A DNA stretch of 64,000 bases, taken from sequence record OQ722176.1; one strand, written 5' to 3'. This document shows positions 9,625-45,159 of this stretch, one piece after another (positions within the stretch are counted from its first letter, which is position 1; every line of letters starts with the position of its first letter). The notes under the pieces were generated by a model, which saw nothing but the letters and a program-made list of their open reading frames with translations, did no database searches and was not told the origin of the DNA. Made by a program: the position numbers and the translations under genes.

Positions 9625-9897
9625 ATGCAACACTTTGTTTTCCAAAATGGGGAGCCGATTAACGTCGGCAACCCACAAGCGTTCTTAAATAAATTTAACA
9701 AACAATTCCTGCCAGACCTACAAAAGCGTTTAGACGACGACCCGAAAACTCGCGGTGGTAGAATCGTTTATGTAGGTCCCTCGCAATCAAATACCGTTCA
9801 AGGTATTGACGTTCAAATTGAAGACAAGAATGGCGTAATCTCGACGTTCTATGTCAATCCGTTCACGCAAACATTCTGTCCAGTCTTCTATCAGTGA
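9625..9897 (+). CDS. Hypothetical protein
   Basis: Coupled ORF. Confidence 0.6.
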   Translation: MQHFVFQNGEPINVGNPQAFLNKFNKQFLPDLQKRLDDDPKTRGGRIVYVGPSQSNTVQGIDVQIEDKNGVISTFYVNPFTQTFCPVFYQ

Positions 9898-9928
9898 TAA
9901 ATACTCCCGTATGAATAATATGGGAGTA
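9898..9928 (+). promoter_or_regulatory. Late promoter TAAATA plus SD-sequestering hairpin
   Basis: TACTCCCGTAT (9902-12) pairs with ATATGGGAGTA (9918-28). Confidence 0.7.
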
Positions 9929-9933
9929 ATATC

Positions 9934-10317
9934 ATGTTCGCACAATACAAACTCTACGTGCTTGCTGCTATTGCTGTTATCGTCATCGGGTCTATTGGTT
10001 ATCTAAAGTATGAGAATGTTAGTCTTGAGAGAGATCTAGTAACTCAAACTGCCGAAGTTGAACGACTAACAGGTGAGAATGAACGGCTAGAAGCTACAGT
10101 CAAGCAGAAAAACCAAACAATCGAAGACTGGCGAGTTGTCTACGAAGAGCAATTGACCTTTAGAGATAATCTTCAGTCAAAGCTCGACGAGAAGAACAAC
10201 ACGATTGAGCGATATAAAGCTCGTCAAGACGTTGTATTCCAAAAGCCAGGGTTAGTTCAACGTTTAGAGCAGAAAGCTTTAGACAAGTTCTTTGATGAGG
10301 TGAGAAATGCTAAATAA
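9934..10317 (+). CDS. pseT.3: i-spanin (PseT.3/Rz-like)
   Basis: N-terminal TM then coiled coil; position between rnlA and pseT. Confidence 0.75.
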   Translation: MFAQYKLYVLAAIAVIVIGSIGYLKYENVSLERDLVTQTAEVERLTGENERLEATVKQKNQTIEDWRVVYEEQLTFRDNLQSKLDEKNNTIERYKARQDVVFQKPGLVQRLEQKALDKFFDEVRNAK

Positions 10318-10636
10318 ACTACTAGCGTTCGCGCTTTGCTTCACTCTCGTGGGCTGCGGTCTATTTCCAAAAGAGCCAACACCAGAACCTCAAACGAACA
10401 ATATTGTTCACCCAAGTATGCCAGTTCCGCCAGCTAATCCCGGTGTGAAAATCTTGGTAATCACTACAGATACCATCGAAGATAACAAGGCATATGTCGG
10501 GTTTGAGTACGAAGAGTGGTTGAACTTCGCGAAATGGATGCACACGTATAAAGCTTATAACACTGATTTACTTGAAGTTATTCGCTTGTACAAAGAGCAA
10601 GATCCGAATATTCAGAAAAAAGTTGAAAATAATTAA
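10307..10636 (+). CDS. pseT.2: o-spanin lipoprotein (PseT.2/Rz1-like)
   Basis: Lipobox LVGC, Pro-rich; overlaps i-spanin. Confidence 0.75.
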   Translation: MLNKLLAFALCFTLVGCGLFPKEPTPEPQTNNIVHPSMPVPPANPGVKILVITTDTIEDNKAYVGFEYEEWLNFAKWMHTYKAYNTDLLEVIRLYKEQDPNIQKKVENN

Positions 10637-18128: not shown

Positions 18129-18153
18129 AAAAGGGGCATTTAGCCCCTTTTTT
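18129..18153. terminator. Bidirectional terminator
   Basis: A4-GGGGC-ATTTA-GCCCC-T6 between convergent genes. Confidence 0.85.
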
Positions 18154-19207
18154 ATGGTCTGTAGATCATGTGATTAGCACCCATTCGTTCCCATTCACCA
18201 CTGCTCATGCGTCTTTTCATTTCATCAAAGAGAGCAGGGTTAGCGCGAATGTCATCAAGTGGCAATGCAACAACACCTTCAGTTTTGTGAGCTAAAAGCT
18301 CAAGTCGATCAAGTAAGTCGGCAGACGTTCGACCATTGTATTCAAATTTACTGAACCAATAACCAATCTTGCTGAACTTAGTATCTCTGGTGTACTTCAC
18401 ATCGAATCCTTTCAAAGCATATAGCAAGCTACTTTCTTTGCCATGAAACGGCTTTTTGTATTCGCTGTGTTCAGCACCAGCACGTGCAAGCAATCGTTTC
18501 TTAGCATCGTCTGGTATATTGAACCAACCGTCAAAATTCTTCTTGAATCTGTTAATCCATGCTTCGGCAGTTGCGGGAGCGCCTTTAAACTGAGCCTTGG
18601 TGTCAGCTATTGCTTGTGCATATCGTGCGTTAATCTCATGAGAATAGTTCTGATATTCGTCGTGAGACGCTGTGTGACCGGTTTTAGCGTGTCGGATGAA
18701 CTCTTTATCAATGTAAGCTCTATTACGCCCTGAGTGTTGATACACGCCCTCTTCGTCGCGAGTCTCGAAGTCTGCTATATCGCCAGAACGCCAGTTGTCG
18801 TATGCATGTTGCAGTTCGTGTAATGCAGTGCTGTACATTTGGTCTTTCTTGACTCTGAACTTAGCCATAATCTGACTAACCGCAGTAACGCCAGTGATGT
18901 CTACGGTGATTTGCAAGTTACCTGCTTCGCCTGCTTGTGGGTCATGCAAAGCACCACGCCAAACGCCTAGTTCAGTTGGGTTTTGGTTGTCTAGTTTAAG
19001 ATACGCGACAATACCACGCGCAAGAAGTGCATCGAATTCAGATTCACCAGTTTTGATGTTCAGATTCTTGGTATTAAGTGCGAGTTTGTTCGGGTCGAAT
19101 GGTGGGCTACTTAGAGCAGCTTCTAATTGTGTCTCAAGTCTATCGACGATAAACTTAGATGCGTACTCTAATGCACGCTGCGATTGAACGCTTTCAAAAA
19201 TAATCAT
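18152..19207 (-). CDS. Putative zincin metallopeptidase-domain late protein
   Basis: ALHELQHAYD (HExxH) and HEINAR; CTAAATA upstream on minus. Confidence 0.6.
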   Translation of the reverse strand: MIIFESVQSQRALEYASKFIVDRLETQLEAALSSPPFDPNKLALNTKNLNIKTGESEFDALLARGIVAYLKLDNQNPTELGVWRGALHDPQAGEAGNLQITVDITGVTAVSQIMAKFRVKKDQMYSTALHELQHAYDNWRSGDIADFETRDEEGVYQHSGRNRAYIDKEFIRHAKTGHTASHDEYQNYSHEINARYAQAIADTKAQFKGAPATAEAWINRFKKNFDGWFNIPDDAKKRLLARAGAEHSEYKKPFHGKESSLLYALKGFDVKYTRDTKFSKIGYWFSKFEYNGRTSADLLDRLELLAHKTEGVVALPLDDIRANPALFDEMKRRMSSGEWERMGANHMIYRP

Positions 19208-19225
19208 CTTTTTTCTCGAATTCGG

Positions 19226-19254
19226 TTGACTGTATTACTTATTTAGGTTAATAT
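19226..19254 (+). promoter_or_regulatory. Early promoter overlapping a minus-strand late promoter (TATTTA 19240-45)
   Basis: TTGACT-17-TAATAT. Confidence 0.65.
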
Positions 19255-25553: not shown

Positions 25554-26228
25554 ATGTTAGACAAAAATAAAGTAGATCCTATCCTAGGACAAAAAGTTGA
25601 AGCGCATCTTCGCAAAATCGGAATGCACACGCCGACTGTTGAAAACGGTCTAACTGATGATGAAAAGAAAGCGATTCTTGAAGATCGATTTACTGACATC
25701 ATGCAAGCTCTTGGTCTTGACCTGTCAGACGATTCGTTAGTCGATACGCCAAAGCGTTGGGCTAAGATGATGGTAAACGAGCTTATGAGCGGTCTATCGC
25801 CAGATATGTTCCCGAAATGTACGGCAGTAGACAACAAAATGAACTACGATCAGATGGTTTGTGAAAAAGGCATTACTGTTCTTTCACAATGTGAACATCA
25901 CATCGTGACAATCGACGGGTTTGCCACTGTTGCATACATCCCGAAGAACAAAGTTCTTGGTCTTTCTAAAATGAATCGAATCGTTGAGTACTTCGCTCGA
26001 CGCCCGCAGATTCAAGAGCGTCTGACTGTTCAAATCGCTGAAGCACTGAAGTTCATTCTTGAAACTGAAGACGTAGCGGTGATGTTAGACTGCAAACACT
26101 ATTGTGTCAAAGCGCGTGGTGTTGAAGACAACAACTCAAGTACTGTTACAAGTCATCTTTCAGGTGCTTTTAGAAATGAACCGGAAGCACGAGCAGAATT
26201 TATGTCTCTTGCTCGTTCACAGGCGTAA
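25554..26228 (+). CDS. folE: GTP cyclohydrolase I
   Basis: DTPKRWAK, SQCEHH, GLSKMNR, RPQIQERL, HYCVKARG. Confidence 0.95.
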   Translation: MLDKNKVDPILGQKVEAHLRKIGMHTPTVENGLTDDEKKAILEDRFTDIMQALGLDLSDDSLVDTPKRWAKMMVNELMSGLSPDMFPKCTAVDNKMNYDQMVCEKGITVLSQCEHHIVTIDGFATVAYIPKNKVLGLSKMNRIVEYFARRPQIQERLTVQIAEALKFILETEDVAVMLDCKHYCVKARGVEDNNSSTVTSHLSGAFRNEPEARAEFMSLARSQA

Positions 26229-26901
26229 CGTACCAATCTTTGAACTTAGCCGATGTGTATTTTACGCATCGGTTATACACAGTCACATTAGTGGTATCAT
26301 TAGCTTCGGCTGCTAATCGAGACGACTCAAACACCCCGTTTGGTGTGTGAAATAGATACTTTGATTGCGGGTTTTGACTCCCGACTTTAGACTTAGCGAG
26401 CTTTCGCTTATGTTCTTCAGTTTTTGTCGTGCCCTTCAGAACACCTTTACTCTTCGCAACATATTCACCGCGAAGGTAGCGTTCGTCGTCAACTCGAATG
26501 TATTCAGTTTCACCAGTAGCAATGCATATCGCAGCAAACTTACCTATATGATGCTTTGCAGCATCTTTTCTGGCATCTTTTGTCATCGACTCAAACAATC
26601 TAGAGTTCATATTGAACTCGCGTTGCTGTGAGCTGTTCGACATATTGAATGCTGTCAGTGCAAACTTCAGGCGATGTTTCAATTTGCCATTGAACATTTT
26701 AGCCAATAGCAAATGAGCTATATAATGCTCACGAGCCGTCAAGCGCACTAGGTTATGTGATTCATCACTACCACCCGCACATTTAGGTAAAATGTGATGT
26801 TTTTCGCTATAGCCGTCGGGTGTGTTTTTAATCCGATTCTCGATTAGAGAAATGTACCATTTTGTGTATTTGTTTAGTATAAGATTGTCGTGTGTTAACA
26901 T
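26200..26901 (-). mobile_element. Free-standing HNH homing endonuclease with NUMOD3-like tail
   Basis: EKHHILPK..GG.D..NLVRLTAREHYIAH; KTEEHKRKL; TATAAATA at 26935-42 minus. Confidence 0.85.
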
Positions 26902-26963
26902 TGTACTCTCTTTAAATAAGCATTACTGTGTTAATATTTATAATTTTTAAGACGAGGTTCACA

Positions 26964-40048: not shown

Positions 40049-41084
40049 TTTGCCAATCGAAACAAAACAGTCTATCGTTAAAGCATCTGCAAACGGTATG
40101 ACACAGAAAGACAACGCGGCGAAGCATGGTACTTCGCCAACTACTCTGCGCCGTGTGCTTGCTGAACACCGTGAAGGCAAATTTAGTCTGAACACTGCGA
40201 AACAAGTCGTTAAGCGACCTGCAAAAGTTAAGTCACTTTCGACTGACTTCAAAGCGAATCTAGACGAGTTGCTAGACGCTACTGGCACTAAAACTGAGCC
40301 AACTCAGAAGATGAAAGCGCCTGAGCCTGAAAAGACTCTTGATCAAAAGCTAGAAGAAGCAATTGAAGACTTCGCTTACGTCATTACACCAGTCAACGTG
40401 TCGTTTACCTTTAAAGGTCAAGCGTTCTCTGCTGACATTACAGCACCGAACTACAGCAAAATCGTTGCTGCATTGCTTGAGTCTGACGGTGAACTTGCAG
40501 TGTCATTGCTTGATGTTGCTAAAGGCATCGAAGAGTTCATGCTAGGCAACGTAGTTGTCAAGGGTGGCGTTGTTAAGTATCGTGATCTTGACATCGACGG
40601 TGGCATGACTGATCGCATTCTTGAAGCAATGGAAGAAGGCGACAAGTCTCAAGTGACCAAGCTAGTGAAGTTCTTCGAGAACCTAATCACTAACCCGTCA
40701 CGTCGCGCTGTAGAAGAGCTTTACGGCTTCTTAGAAGCTGCTGACATCGAACTAACAGACGATGGTCACTTCTTAGCGTACAAGAAGATTCGCGAGAACT
40801 ACAACGACATTCACAGCAATAGCATGAGCAACAAGCCGGGTGAGCGCGTGTGGATGCTACGTCACCAAGTGAACGACAACAAAGACCAGACGTGTTCTGC
40901 GGGTCTGCATGTATGTTCGAAAGGTTACTTGCCACACTTCGGTGGTGCTGCTGGTAATCGCGTTGTACTGTGTAAAGTCAACCCACGTGATGTTGTGTCA
41001 GTACCAAGCGACTACAACAACACTAAGTTGCGCTGTAGCGAATACCTAGTTCTGAAAGAGCTAGACAAAAATACTTTGAAATAA
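40041..41084 (+). CDS. rIIB: RIIB protein
   Basis: N-terminal HTH; DGHFLAYKK, CSAGLHV, KVNPRDVVSVP, KLRCSEY. Confidence 0.93.
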   Translation: MVNLPIETKQSIVKASANGMTQKDNAAKHGTSPTTLRRVLAEHREGKFSLNTAKQVVKRPAKVKSLSTDFKANLDELLDATGTKTEPTQKMKAPEPEKTLDQKLEEAIEDFAYVITPVNVSFTFKGQAFSADITAPNYSKIVAALLESDGELAVSLLDVAKGIEEFMLGNVVVKGGVVKYRDLDIDGGMTDRILEAMEEGDKSQVTKLVKFFENLITNPSRRAVEELYGFLEAADIELTDDGHFLAYKKIRENYNDIHSNSMSNKPGERVWMLRHQVNDNKDQTCSAGLHVCSKGYLPHFGGAAGNRVVLCKVNPRDVVSVPSDYNNTKLRCSEYLVLKELDKNTLK

Positions 41085-41092
41085 GTTTGATA

Positions 41093-41128
41093 AAAGGGTT
41101 GACTTCGGTCAGCCCTTTCGCGTATTAT
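41093..41128 (+). promoter_or_regulatory. Terminator-promoter fusion cassette
   Basis: AAAGGGTTGAC-TTCG-GTCAGCCCTTT; TTGACT-18-TATTAT. Confidence 0.8.
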
Positions 41129-41163
41129 AGCTTCATCGAAACGAAACACACAAAGAGAACATT

Positions 41164-41520
41164 ATGAACACTATGAACGCAACTGACCTACGCACTGTAG
41201 AAATTCTAGTAGAACAGAAAGACGCAGCTATTGTTAATCAACAAGAGTATCGCAATGCATTTGCATTCGCTTACGGCTGCATGACTGGCGTTCAACGTCA
41301 AGTATTTCGTGACTATCACATGAACGTGCTAGTAGAACGCTTTGACATCGAGTACTGTCAATCGAATCAAGTTATTCTGCCGTATGGTGAATTGAAATCA
41401 TCAATCAAATTCATCAAAGATTCCCTGAGCGAGATTGACTACGCAGAACTAAAATCTGACTTTCAATTCAATATCTACTTGCCAGAGGAACAAAATGAAA
41501 CGACTAAAGAAACACATTAA
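41164..41520 (+). CDS. Hypothetical early protein
   Basis: GAGAACATTATG leader. Confidence 0.65.
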   Translation: MNTMNATDLRTVEILVEQKDAAIVNQQEYRNAFAFAYGCMTGVQRQVFRDYHMNVLVERFDIEYCQSNQVILPYGELKSSIKFIKDSLSEIDYAELKSDFQFNIYLPEEQNETTKETH

Positions 41521-42161
41521 GTCATACGACGAACACGGTGTTGTGCAGTATAATATGCTGCTAATATTCTCTTTGATTATAGCAGTGTCTATGTCAATAG
41601 CATTAGTAGCATCAAATATTCTATTCGCATTCGAAGTGAATGACGTAACTGCCAACATCAAAACGCCCAGGTGATGCATTCTGGACTGTATGGATGGCTA
41701 TGAGCACAATCGGTTTTGGTGATCATTATCCTGTTACTACAGGTGGTCGAATCGTGATTGGCTCGATGTTTGTTGTCGGTGCGTCTCTGATTGGTATGAA
41801 TATCGGTATTGCCAATGCTTGGATGTCGTCTAAGTTCGATAAAAGCATTCAGAATCGCGTGTTGAAGACACAAGGTGACGCTTCATTTCAGAAGCTTGAC
41901 CGTATCGAGAAGTTTCTTGGTATTGACCAGACAGTTGTTTTCAGTGAAGAAGCTCACGGTATTGATCAGCAAATCGAACAGAAGATGGACACGAATGGTG
42001 ACATGGAATGCATCATCACGCTTGGCAAAGACGATAGCGGTCGCTATGTAGTTGCAATCAATGAGCGCAACGTCGAAACGGATGTAGCTGCACTTCGTTG
42101 GCATACGTTCTTACGTCCTACTGAAGCAAAAGCATTTTACGATAACTTTAAAGGTGTATAA
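41495..42161 (+). pseudogene. KcsA-like K+ channel split by a +1 frameshift at 41666-41674
   Basis: TM1 ORF ends CCC AGG TGA; +1 frame continues GDAFWTVWMAMSTIGFGDHYPVT then TM2. Confidence 0.8.
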
Positions 42162-42162
42162 A

Positions 42163-42723
42163 ATGAAAATTCGCACAATCGCAATCGTTAGTATGATTGC
42201 AGTACTCGCGGGCTGTGATAATGGCTCTGCTACTCTAGACACAAACGCATACTATGCCGAGCAAGGTCAGCCATTGATGCAAGCGCCAACGGTCGATGAC
42301 TTTCCGCCAGTGAATAATGTACAAGAAGTTGTACAACAACCTGTACAACAAGCGCCAGTTGTGATTCATCAATCTGAAGATGAGGGATTCGATTGGGGGG
42401 CGGCAGCAATTGGTTTTGTAGCGGCAGAGATTGTAGATGATGTCTTTGATTCTGGTAAAAAGAACTACATTGCACCGACTCAAGCACCAATCATCAACAA
42501 AGTTACACCGTATCAGACAAAAACTGCGCCTGTAATCAAGAAAGTAGCTCCCGTGAAGCCTGTTGAAGTGAAGAAAGTAGAGCAGAAAAAGTCTACTGAG
42601 TTGAAGAACAAGAAGCCTACTACAGTCAAGAAAGTAGAAAAGCCAAAGAAAGTTCTGTCTAAGCCGAAGCCTAAGAAGAAATCAGGTGGGTTTAAGATGA
42701 AGTTTGGTAAGAAGAGACGATAA
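42163..42723 (+). CDS. Lipoprotein with Pro/Lys-rich tail
   Basis: Lipobox LAGC. Confidence 0.7.
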   Translation: MKIRTIAIVSMIAVLAGCDNGSATLDTNAYYAEQGQPLMQAPTVDDFPPVNNVQEVVQQPVQQAPVVIHQSEDEGFDWGAAAIGFVAAEIVDDVFDSGKKNYIAPTQAPIINKVTPYQTKTAPVIKKVAPVKPVEVKKVEQKKSTELKNKKPTTVKKVEKPKKVLSKPKPKKKSGGFKMKFGKKRR

Positions 42724-42724
42724 G

Positions 42725-42747
42725 AAAAGGGGCAGAAATGCCCCTTT
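42725..42747. terminator. Terminator hairpin
   Basis: A4-GGGGCA-GAAA-TGCCCC-T3. Confidence 0.7.
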
Positions 42748-42754
42748 GAAATTA

Positions 42755-42846
42755 AAAAGCGAGGGAGGCGACTATAGTAGAACCAATACTCGCAGTGACC
42801 AATGCGATAACATAGTCACATCCCTCGAAACTGTAAAAAAAGTCTC
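42755..42846 (-). ncRNA. Candidate structured small RNA (or 13-aa sORF cassette)
   Basis: CTAAATA at 42852-58 minus; long closing stem, two inner hairpins, U tract. Confidence 0.45.
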
Positions 42847-42911
42847 TATCTTATTTAGTGTTTTGTTACGTGTTGCATAGCAATTATCTCAATAAAAATC
42901 TGAAATAATTG

Positions 42912-42940
42912 TTGACTAAAGTGTAAAATATGCGTATCAT
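42912..42940 (+). promoter_or_regulatory. Early promoter
   Basis: TTGACT-17-TATCAT. Confidence 0.7.
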
Positions 42941-42989
42941 ACAGCATATAAAGACGAAACGTTCAAAAATCCAACAAAAGGTGTATAAA

Positions 42990-43457
42990 ATGACTCCAAA
43001 ATCGTTAATTCGCGCCGCGAATACAGTAGTTTCTGAATTGCAAATCTTCAATGGCTCAGACAGCACAGTTGTTGTTGGCAGACCTGGGAGTGGCAAGAAC
43101 GCTATGCTGATGGGAATGCTAGTTCAGCGTGGCGTACGAGAAAGCACTATGATTGTGACTGAGCAACGTCACACTGAAATGGCAGCAAAACTTGGTGAGG
43201 GTTCACTCGTTATTCAAAGCGGGTTAGATCTTGAGTCTCTTATCTCTTCAGTTGCATTTGCATGTAGTCAAGAGCGTAAACACATCTTTATTGAACATGT
43301 TTCGCCAATTCTAGGTCACAATATTGTTGAGATTCTAGAGTCAATCGCTAAGCCATTCAACAAGCGTATCTATGTTGGTATGCAAGCTGTACGCAGTCAT
43401 AGTGGTCTAGGTGATAACTATCAAACACAAATGATGAATACATTGAAACTGGGGTGA
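42990..43457 (+). CDS. P-loop fold protein, possibly degenerate
   Basis: VVVGRPGSGKN. Confidence 0.6.
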   Translation: MTPKSLIRAANTVVSELQIFNGSDSTVVVGRPGSGKNAMLMGMLVQRGVRESTMIVTEQRHTEMAAKLGEGSLVIQSGLDLESLISSVAFACSQERKHIFIEHVSPILGHNIVEILESIAKPFNKRIYVGMQAVRSHSGLGDNYQTQMMNTLKLG

Positions 43458-43735
43458 TTATGAACTTCTTTCAAATAAGCATGAATCTAGCGACTGATTC
43501 ATCAATTAACCCAGACGAAGCTTGGGCTGATAAGCAATTGATTATTGCTTCTAGTCACGAAATGGCTCGAAAACTTGCCGACGCACGCGAGAAAGGTCGT
43601 CATGGTTGGCATGACCCTAATGTGTGCTCTATCGACTATCTCTATGAGTTGCGCGATAAAGCACTTGAAGACAATGATCATGTCAGTGTGATGAACTACA
43701 CTGCAATGATCGCTATGCGGGAGAGTGTACAATGA
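43454..43735 (+). CDS. Hypothetical protein
   Basis: Coupled ORF. Confidence 0.6.
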   Translation: MIMNFFQISMNLATDSSINPDEAWADKQLIIASSHEMARKLADAREKGRHGWHDPNVCSIDYLYELRDKALEDNDHVSVMNYTAMIAMRESVQ

Positions 43736-44772
43736 ACGTACTATACACGAGCCTATTCGGTTCAAAACTATATGGCACAGACACGCCAGAGTCAGATACT
43801 GATTACAAAGCTGTCTTCTTACCAGAATTGCGTACGCTATTGCGTGGCGTTGCAATCAAGAACTCAGTTCATTCAACTGGTAAAGCGTTCTCAAAGAACG
43901 GCGCAGAAGATGAAGACTTTGAATACATCCCTGTTCAAGTGTTCATGCGTGACTTTCTAGGCGGTCAGTCGTATGCTATCGAGTTAGCATTCAACGCATT
44001 ACAGAACCCTGATGACTGTCATCCTGCGTTTCATGCTATGTGTCAAGAGCTAACACGCAAATACTTGACATCAAACGTCAAAGCAATGACGGGTTATGCA
44101 TTGAACCAAGCGCAGAAATACGGCATCAAAGGCACAAGACTAAACAGCCTTATGGAATTTGCACGTGCTGTAGAGACGCACAACGTCGATTCTAAAGCGA
44201 AGTTGGGTTCAAGCCCTGAGTTGTGTCAACGTCTATGGGAACTAAGCGCAGAAGACGCTCACGTGCGTTTTCAGTGGTATCACGGGCCCAAGACTACAGA
44301 CGCAAGCGATTTGCAAGACCCTGCGTTCAGCGTACTTGAGAAAGTATTCGGTCTTGAAATCTCATTCGAAGAAGCGGCTGGTCGTCTTGAGAAGATGATG
44401 AGCAAATATGGTGCGCGTTCGTATCAAGCTCGTGCTGCTAGTGGTTCAGACTGGAAAGCGATCTCTCATGCTATGCGAGTAATCGATCAAGCAATCGACA
44501 TCCTTGAAGTTGGTAAGCTTGAGTTCCCATTGAAGCACGCTGCATTCTATCGTGACGTTAAAATCGGTAAGTACAAATGGGAATATGTCTCTGAAGTGCT
44601 GCAAGAACGCCTTGAGAAGCTTGAAAATGCAAAAGCTACAACGTCACTTCCGAATCATACGCCAGATTTAGTAGCTCAATTCTACATGTGGTACGACGAT
44701 TATCTTGACGAGTTCTACTTTCCGTGTATAATGACTGACGAAGAAGTGAAAGAAATGCTAGGTGCTTACTAG
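43732..44772 (+). CDS. Pol-beta superfamily nucleotidyltransferase (NrdC.11-like)
   Basis: FGSKLYGTDTPESDTDYKAVFLP. Confidence 0.8.
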   Translation: MNVLYTSLFGSKLYGTDTPESDTDYKAVFLPELRTLLRGVAIKNSVHSTGKAFSKNGAEDEDFEYIPVQVFMRDFLGGQSYAIELAFNALQNPDDCHPAFHAMCQELTRKYLTSNVKAMTGYALNQAQKYGIKGTRLNSLMEFARAVETHNVDSKAKLGSSPELCQRLWELSAEDAHVRFQWYHGPKTTDASDLQDPAFSVLEKVFGLEISFEEAAGRLEKMMSKYGARSYQARAASGSDWKAISHAMRVIDQAIDILEVGKLEFPLKHAAFYRDVKIGKYKWEYVSEVLQERLEKLENAKATTSLPNHTPDLVAQFYMWYDDYLDEFYFPCIMTDEEVKEMLGAY

Positions 44773-44773
44773 T

Positions 44774-44781
44774 TATAAATA
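44774..44781 (+). promoter_or_regulatory. T4 late promoter
   Basis: Perfect TATAAATA. Confidence 0.8.
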
Positions 44782-44805
44782 CGTTAAACAAACTAGGGAT
44801 ATAAC

Positions 44806-45159
44806 ATGAAATCATTTAATCAATTCATGATTGAGTCGTCGTACACATTCACACCGAAGAGCCAAGTTGATGAAATTCTTCTGAAGTCTGGTCAAGAAGT
44901 GTTTGGTCGCATGATTCAACCGATGATGAGCAAGGTGTATGGGGATATTCAATTCACATTCCCTGTACCTAGCAACAAGAAAGCACCACGTGGCTGGTTT
45001 ACTAAGCTTGTTAACAGCATTTCGAAGAATTCTGGCGTTACTGCTGATTACATCGACGAAAAACGCAAAGAAGCTGAGTTCACAATTGGTGATCAACGTA
45101 TCGTTATCACTAAGACGATGACTGGTTCACCTGGCGGTTACATTCGCGAGAAGTTTTAA
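44806..45159 (+). CDS. Putative internal head protein
   Basis: MKSFNQFMIE; late promoter. Confidence 0.65.
   Translation: MKSFNQFMIESSYTFTPKSQVDEILLKSGQEVFGRMIQPMMSKVYGDIQFTFPVPSNKKAPRGWFTKLVNSISKNSGVTADYIDEKRKEAEFTIGDQRIVITKTMTGSPGGYIREKF

Follow-up and report, generated by a model that had tools for sequence, protein, structure and literature searches.

Attenuators and riboswitch platforms that work through terminators are well described, for example the trp/TRAP, PyrR and T-box leaders, and in Listeria the small RNAs SreA and SreB arise by premature termination of leaders. Among phages, HK022 put is a cis-acting antiterminator RNA that is promoter-proximal and consists of two adjacent hairpins. 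In T4, the genes e, soc, 49 and I-TevI have a late promoter inside or after the 5′ arm of a hairpin, so that the late RNAs free the ribosome-binding site, while the stable T4 RNAs C and D are non-coding RNAs of the tRNA cluster that are processed with the tRNAs and have no assigned function. T4-type late transcription is usually viewed as plain promoter control, and to our knowledge almost no regulatory RNAs have been described in T4-type phages other than T4. A further terminated-leader RNA, sRNA RZ, is described in PMC9373788 as a small RNA produced by premature leader termination at the metZ SAM-II riboswitch.

Here we describe an RNA element of Vibrio phage vB_VspM_VS2 (OQ722176.1), a KVP40-like T4-type phage (Straboviridae, genus Schizotequatrovirus) of 250 kb, located in a stretch of 64,000 nucleotides that was analysed as a whole and is referred to below as the window. 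The element resembles terminator-based attenuators: it is a promoter-proximal leader with helices that exclude one another, its GC-rich stem leads into a U run and, in relatives, a gene lies directly downstream. It differs from them in that its main folds both keep the terminal stem, in having no Rfam match, and in belonging to the T4-type late transcription of a Gram-negative phage with no regulated gene in the window. The element shares with sRNA RZ and SreA/SreB a leader that stops at a terminator of its own and might work as a free RNA, and the VS2 clade provides a natural leader-only version; unlike in those cases, activity in trans is deduced here just from conservation after loss of an ORF. 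With T4 genes e, soc, 49 and I-TevI the element shares a T4-type phage and a late promoter beside a stable leader hairpin, but its promoter precedes the entire structure and the ribosome-binding site downstream in the relatives lies outside it. An earlier note on this DNA had compared the element to T4 RNAs C and D, which it resembles as a phage-encoded non-coding RNA, but it stands apart from the VS2 tRNA cluster by ~150 kb and is served by a late promoter and a terminator of its own. Like HK022 put, it sits just past its promoter and can form two adjacent hairpins (in fold B, below); its enclosing stem and U tract, however, are terminator-like rather than terminator-suppressing, and the likeness is one of description. 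The kind of element is known, namely a structured leader or terminated-leader small RNA; the RNA family, its T4-type late setting, its balanced two-state core and its natural orphan version are new. We take as shown the conservation and covariation of the element, its strand and context, the deletion of the ORF and the bistability as computed, and consider it somewhat more probable than the reverse that it is a conserved RNA module of KVP40-like vibriophages, a minus-strand late leader/small-RNA switch that has a function of its own in the VS2 clade.

Positions 42600–43000 of the window are 100% identical to VS2. Nearly all genes of the window are carried on the plus strand, and the element occupies an intergenic gap flanked by two plus-strand ORFs. 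It overlaps no CDS, which makes "antisense", the term first applied to it, a misnomer. The CTAAATA motif, the closing stem, its extension (about 8 pairs), the inner hairpin, the U tract and the 13-codon ORF all lie on the minus strand where the earlier note had placed them (Table 1).

Table 1. Features of the RNA element and its surroundings in VS2 (positions in the window).
Feature	Position	Strand	Sequence or remark
Upstream plus-strand ORF	42154-42723	+	PHROG 13991, homologue of KVP40.0149
U-rich run following the terminator hairpin	42722-42728	-	UUUUCUU
Bidirectional terminator hairpin	42729-42744	both	GGGGCAGAAATGCCCC; predicted second stop at ~123 nt
U tract	42758-42754	-	UUUUU; one C (42759) after P1; seen in the sequence itself; terminator-like end at ~93 nt
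Structured core, 68 nt	42760-42827	-	P1 + P1b + P2
Closing stem P1, 7 bp	42827-42821 with 42766-42760	-	CGAGGGA with UCCCUCG
Extension P1b	42819-42812 with 42775-42768	-	GUGACUAU with AUAGUCGC; includes U-G wobble
Inner hairpin P2	42807-42790	-	UCGCA-UUGGUCAC-UGCGA
Invariant core, 19 nt	42782-42800	-	GGUCAC-N-GCGAGUAUUGGU; shared strand of alternative helices
13-codon ORF	42813-42772	-	MLSHWSLRVLVLL, then stop; GAGGGA upstream; not regarded as a gene
Conserved 5′ flank	42828-42833	-	CAGUUU; candidate anti-P1 helix with CGAG-UAUUG, using the first two P1 bases too
Late-promoter motif (T4 gp55-type)	42852-42858	-	CTAAATA
Strong sigma-70-type early promoter	42912-42940		TTGACT-17-TATCAT; adjoins element
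Downstream plus-strand ORF	42930-43457 as listed; real start ~42990	+	QD01 comparison

The flanking genes show several features of their own. The start of the downstream plus-strand gene in relatives (QD01_148, KVP40.0151) is the equivalent of ~42990, and the listed start falls within the early promoter; the KVP40.0151 annotation records a PF00406 (adenylate kinase family) match. From ~43388, VS2 and VS1/QD01 diverge sharply at the 3′ end of this gene, a pattern suggestive of a mosaic join. The upstream gene has, in VS1 and QD01, 9 nt more than in VS2, inserted in frame at 42542 in the Lys-rich C-terminal part.

By blastn, we found the element in 47 Vibrio phage records, at one place per record, falling into six lineages: VS2/VS1/QD01, KVP40, VH7D/ValKK3, nt-1/CZ01, F86 and D482/6E35. 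A covariance model made from four lineages scores F86 at 62.5 bits and D482 at 49.6 bits, thus recovering both, and detects exactly one locus per genome in the five whole genomes searched. T4-type genomes contain repeated regulatory cassettes, made of a promoter plus stem-loop repeats and present in many copies per genome; since the element is single-copy, membership of such a cassette or of a repeat family was ruled out. In the model-based alignment, pairing holds in 96.6% of cells and compensatory double changes are seen at 6 of the 20 pairs, against 27–46% of cells and 0–1 pairs, respectively, in slid controls; these are figures that derive from six lineages only and from an alignment fitted to the model. 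Examples are a change from C-G to U-A at the base of P1, from U-A to C-G in P1b and from A-U to U-A in P2. The element is thus no mere product of chance, being conserved and having stems that covariation supports. The 19-nt core is the same in all six lineages save position N, and the RNA core as a whole is 79–94% identical among lineages, compared to 45–61% for the protein encoded downstream.

Searches of viral, metagenome and bacterial-genome collections gave no relatives beyond these vibriophages. An Rfam 15 cmscan of positions 41000–45000 (both strands, E up to 10) left the element unmatched and returned only three weak snoRNA-like hits near 43427; ARAGORN predicted 0 tRNA or tmRNA genes in the window, and all 29 hits of RF00005 over the VS2 genome lie at 7.9–16.6 kb, with zero at the element. 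A pattern search of viral contigs with the exact core recovered only KVP40 and VH7D themselves, and a protein-based locus search of viral contigs confirmed no further homologue. Seventy-five metagenome hits and 80 bacterial-genome hits were rejected with the covariance model (the metagenome loci also by eye) as chance matches in unrelated, mostly coding DNA. We found no earlier description of the element in the literature searched. A search for sequencing runs that contain the locus gave three DNA metagenome runs and no RNA run. The public F86 and D482 records annotate short hypothetical CDSs over the RNA element, VPHF86_0175 and VPHD482_0191 (extracted-locus positions 1564-1656 on the minus strand and 1487-1609 on the plus strand, respectively), which are probably spurious gene calls.

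The structured minus-strand RNA had been proposed to stand behind a late promoter, and the comparison agrees: CTAAATA is invariant in the six lineages, with variable flanking bases. The motif is TATAAATA-like, conserved and placed ahead of co-oriented late genes, as T4-type late promoters are. Most copies of (A/C)TAAATA in the window likewise lie 19–33 nt 5′ of co-oriented start codons, including those of Rz-like spanin and homing-endonuclease genes, and elsewhere in VS2 ATAAATA precedes the gp23 and gp19 (tail-tube) genes and CTAAATA precedes genes of the structural region, with motif-to-ATG distances of 20–41 nt elsewhere in the genome. The window holds 5 copies of CTAAATA versus 7.5 expected and 10 of WTAAATA versus 21 expected, a scarcity of NTAAATA that is consistent with selection against stray late promoters. 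CTAAATA is also reported as the late consensus of phage Aeh1, and in KVP40 the first position of the late motif is poorly conserved (PMC1524935). Transcription of the element would start at ~42846, because the T4 late motif sits at -13 to -6 (Nolan et al., PMC1524935). In nt-1 the motif lies just 6 nt ahead of the stem, and the RNA would therefore begin at the first base of P1.

Some of the other motif copies belong to genes of interest in themselves. Within 9897-10636 (+), ATAAATA at 9897 precedes the Rz-like spanin gene (9934-10317); the next ORF, which overlaps it, starts with a lipoprotein-type signal peptide, MLNKLLAFALCFTLVGC, and probably encodes the outer-membrane spanin. The CTAAATA at 10310, inside the start region of this overlapping ORF, may be part of the coding sequence and not a promoter. 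A late motif also stands 32–33 nt upstream of two further minus-strand genes in the plus-strand region: a homing-endonuclease-like gene (motif and gene within 26200-26941; ATAAATA at 26941) and a gene for a 351-aa protein (motif and gene within 18152-19246; CTAAATA at 19246).

At its other end, the element has the appearance of an intrinsic terminator, with a GC-rich stem (P1 and P1b) followed directly, or one base later, by U4–6 in five lineages; nt-1 has a weaker U run next to the stem. P1 was overlooked by a simple terminator scanner because its interior is longer than the loop limit of the program.

We then compared the surroundings of the element among the phages. In 44 of the 47 records the element has the late-promoter motif on one side and, on the other, a minus-strand gene for a membrane protein of the KVP40.0150 family; in KVP40, VH7D, ValKK3, nt-1, CZ01, F86, D482 and 6E35.1a this gene, of 158–188 codons, is directly downstream. 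The gene starts ~15–35 nt past the stem and U tract, leaving no space for a separate promoter, so that the element, positioned between motif and gene, is the 5′ leader of KVP40.0150; at 97–121 nt, this leader compares with 19–41 nt for other late genes. The KVP40.0150 protein (PHROG 14713) has a Gly/Ala-rich hydrophobic stretch and a charged C-terminal half, with sub-threshold hits alone in Pfam (Phage_holin_3_6, E = 5e-4; DUF6861), and an Atlas search with this protein returned nothing informative on function. In the KVP40 fold, the leader pairs with the gene 0150 start codon, but this candidate was dropped since by our reading the pairing is not conserved in nt-1 or F86.

The three remaining records, VS2, VS1 and QD01, have the leader without the gene. 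With tblastn, the KVP40.0150 protein was detected in the other 44 and had no match across the whole VS2 record, and the downstream gene through which an attenuator or riboswitch would act is missing in these three phages. In all relatives, the convergent genes 0149 and 0150 are separated by a bidirectional terminator hairpin; in VS2, this hairpin lies only 12 nt beyond the U tract of the leader, showing that the ORF was excised cleanly and that promoter, leader, U tract and terminator were left. The predicted VS2 products are RNAs of ~93 nt, ending at the module's own U tract, or ~123 nt, ending at the adjacent terminator, and the same ends would apply in VS1 and QD01; the element would effectively be a stand-alone late small RNA.

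This arrangement raises an alternative that we consider unlikely, namely that the element is a purely cis-acting leader of KVP40.0150, of which VS2 retains a recent, functionless relic, too little time having passed since the deletion. The tie between element and gene in 44 of 47 genomes speaks for it, as does the small divergence of the ORF-less isolates, ~1–2.5% in a 401-nt region, from which it follows that the deletion may be young. Against it stands the distribution of variable sites among VS2, VS1 and QD01: there are 0 in 42723-42834 and 32 in the flanking 664 nt (28 in 569 nt of the upstream gene and 4 in a 95-nt spacer), a rate of 4.8%. At that rate, the probability of zero variation is 0.015 for the 85-nt element and 0.004 with the terminator included, in a test that compares three close isolates and in which the terminator is also needed by the plus-strand gene. 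The deletion, moreover, spared the promoter, the stem and the U tract and joined them to a terminator. These data, from three close isolates, suggest that the orphan RNA of the VS2 clade is still under selection, and because the constraint persists after loss of the ORF, we believe the RNA to have a function of its own as well.

Inside P1, computed folding of the structured core gives two mutually exclusive arrangements, as is characteristic of attenuators and riboswitches. Fold A is a long rod of P1b with hairpin P2, and fold B consists of two hairpins, Ha and Hb, lying next to each other. To form fold B, GUGACY from the 5′ strand of P1b pairs with GGUCAC, the 'loop' of P2, and GCGA (plus UAU) from the 3′ strand of P2 pairs with UCGC (plus AUA) from the 3′ strand of P1b; in every lineage, 100% of cells in the fold-B helices can pair. 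The energy gap between the folds is 0.1–0.5 kcal/mol in five lineages and 2.0 kcal/mol in F86. In control shuffles, which kept fold A and randomised pair order and loop bases, the best alternative lay on average ~10 kcal/mol higher (sd 3.4–4.1), and 0.3–1% of shuffles reached the native gap; for F86 the mean gap was 4.8 kcal/mol and 18% reached the native value.

A third helix can be formed between the 5′ flank CAGUUU, together with CG, and the invariant CGAG-UAUUG, and is pairable in five of the six lineages. The exception is nt-1, where the promoter abuts the stem and the U run is weakest. The third helix is present in the minimum-energy fold of nascent transcripts of 58–76 nt, and when the growing transcript is folded, the first structures to form are the hairpin of fold B and this 5′ helix, while fold A arises at full length only. 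We hypothesise that the third helix, which shows no covariation, is an anti-P1 helix. The alternative helices are invariant, so that covariation neither supports nor refutes them, and they are computed only. Two substitutions in shared strands keep pairing with both alternative partners. For the U to C change in P1b, the fold-A partner changes from A to G, and the pair with the invariant fold-B partner improves from U-G to C-G. For the C to U change at the P1 base, a G to A change within P1 restores the pair, and pairing with an invariant G of the third helix is still possible. Both behave as a multi-state design predicts, and in these models overlapping alternative pairings would explain most of the sequence invariance.

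That explanation weighs on a further alternative, in which all these phages would use the element as an independent small RNA or decoy acting in trans and gene 0150 is merely expressed by read-through, the partner being a protein, tRNA 3′ ends (through UGGU) or an anticodon-loop enzyme. Several observations fit such a decoy: loop and linker bases are invariant beyond structural need, the element is kept without the ORF, a stem with a U tail is a typical small-RNA 3′ end, and the P2 loop of D482, CGGUCAC, is one base off the anticodon loop of VS2 tRNA-Asp, CUGUCAC. We nevertheless judge it distinctly unlikely. The invariance is largely accounted for by the overlapping alternative helices; no target emerged, 8-mer complements within the window being at chance level; and P2, a 5-bp stem with a 7-nt loop in D482 and F86, has an 8-nt loop in four lineages and is unmatched by tRNA models.

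The loops had also figured in the earlier note, which described two hairpins with matching loops. The first hairpin, P2, is present; the second, with the loop UUGGUUC, has a 3-bp stem in VS2 that is not conserved, and the loops do not match in the D482 lineage, whose first loop is CGGUCAC. A reading of GGUUC-N-A as a T-loop or tRNA T-arm was ruled out, there being no supporting stem.

A bolder proposal combines two-state folding with action in trans: the element would be a self-contained late RNA serving as a late-infection sensor or timer, or as a decoy for a host or phage factor, and would also gate the membrane-protein gene in most relatives. We regard this as quite improbable. One version of it, which we mention solely as a lead, is a mimic of the tRNA-Asp anticodon arm that would sequester an enzyme or a defence nuclease directed at GUN anticodon loops. 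If the two-state RNA did act in trans, both roles would have become naturally separated in the ORF-less VS2 clade.

The constraint on the element could in principle operate on DNA or on the other strand, as a palindromic site for protein binding, replication or recombination, or as the 3′ structure of an upstream plus-strand mRNA. The plus strand does fold well too (-25.7 kcal/mol, z = -3.34, compared to -31.4 kcal/mol, z = -3.75, for the minus strand), and the strong early promoter adjoins the site. The wobble pairs, however, favour the minus strand, as the earlier note had argued. The U-G pair in P1b (U42818 with G42769), which is an A-C mismatch on the plus strand, is invariant, three more pairs are G-U in single lineages, and all four are mismatches on the plus strand. 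Covariation together with the invariant U-G wobble points to a minus-strand RNA; similarly, the score of the covariance model (R1) is 104.7 bits for the minus strand versus 27.2 bits for the plus strand, and the U tract and the promoter motif are found on the minus strand only. Since the element is single-copy, it is not a repeated DNA cassette, and because its upstream neighbour in relatives is a minus-strand gene, no plus-strand mRNA ends at the element. A role at the DNA level or on the plus strand is therefore very unlikely.

Finally, the 13-codon ORF had been put forward as a possible hydrophobic micropeptide, with its Shine-Dalgarno sequence locked in the stem. The sequestration is borne out by computed folding, the Shine-Dalgarno sequence and the AUG both being buried in stems in folds A and B; the ORF itself is not conserved across lineages. 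The 19-nt core is read in frame 1 in VS2, frame 0 in KVP40, VH7D and nt-1 and frame 2 in F86, so that the conserved frame and start codon of a small-protein gene are not found. A translated leader ORF is hardly credible: although five of the six lineages have a GAGGG-type Shine-Dalgarno sequence and an AUG in equivalent positions, the peptides bear no relation to each other, three frames are used to read the core, D482 has no AUG, all three codon positions are invariant in the core, and the start signals are buried in both folds.

We therefore return to the conserved late leader/small-RNA switch, for which we propose the following course of events. Started at the CTAAATA late promoter, the nascent chain would transiently form the promoter-proximal third helix, and the completed RNA would fold with P1 around a core that has two equally stable, exclusive folds. 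P1 and the U tract would act as an intrinsic terminator that stops part of the transcripts. In the 44 of 47 relatives with gene 0150, the fold of the core would most likely set the read-through into this gene, making the leader a conformational attenuator, although both main folds retain P1 beside the U tract, which makes the link between the switch and termination a weak point of this model. The terminated product would be a stable small RNA protected by its 5′ stem. In VS2, VS1 and QD01, where transcripts would not extend beyond the adjacent terminator, this RNA would probably exert its own function via its invariant single-stranded bases.

Overall, the element is a tractable candidate RNA family, with a clear promoter and terminator, covariation in its stems and a statistically unusual two-state design. 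The natural leader-only variant of the VS2 clade makes function in cis versus function in trans directly testable. The vibriophages concerned are used against aquaculture pathogens, and if read-through into the late membrane protein is controlled by the leader, the element may bear on the timing of lysis or on the exclusion of other phages.
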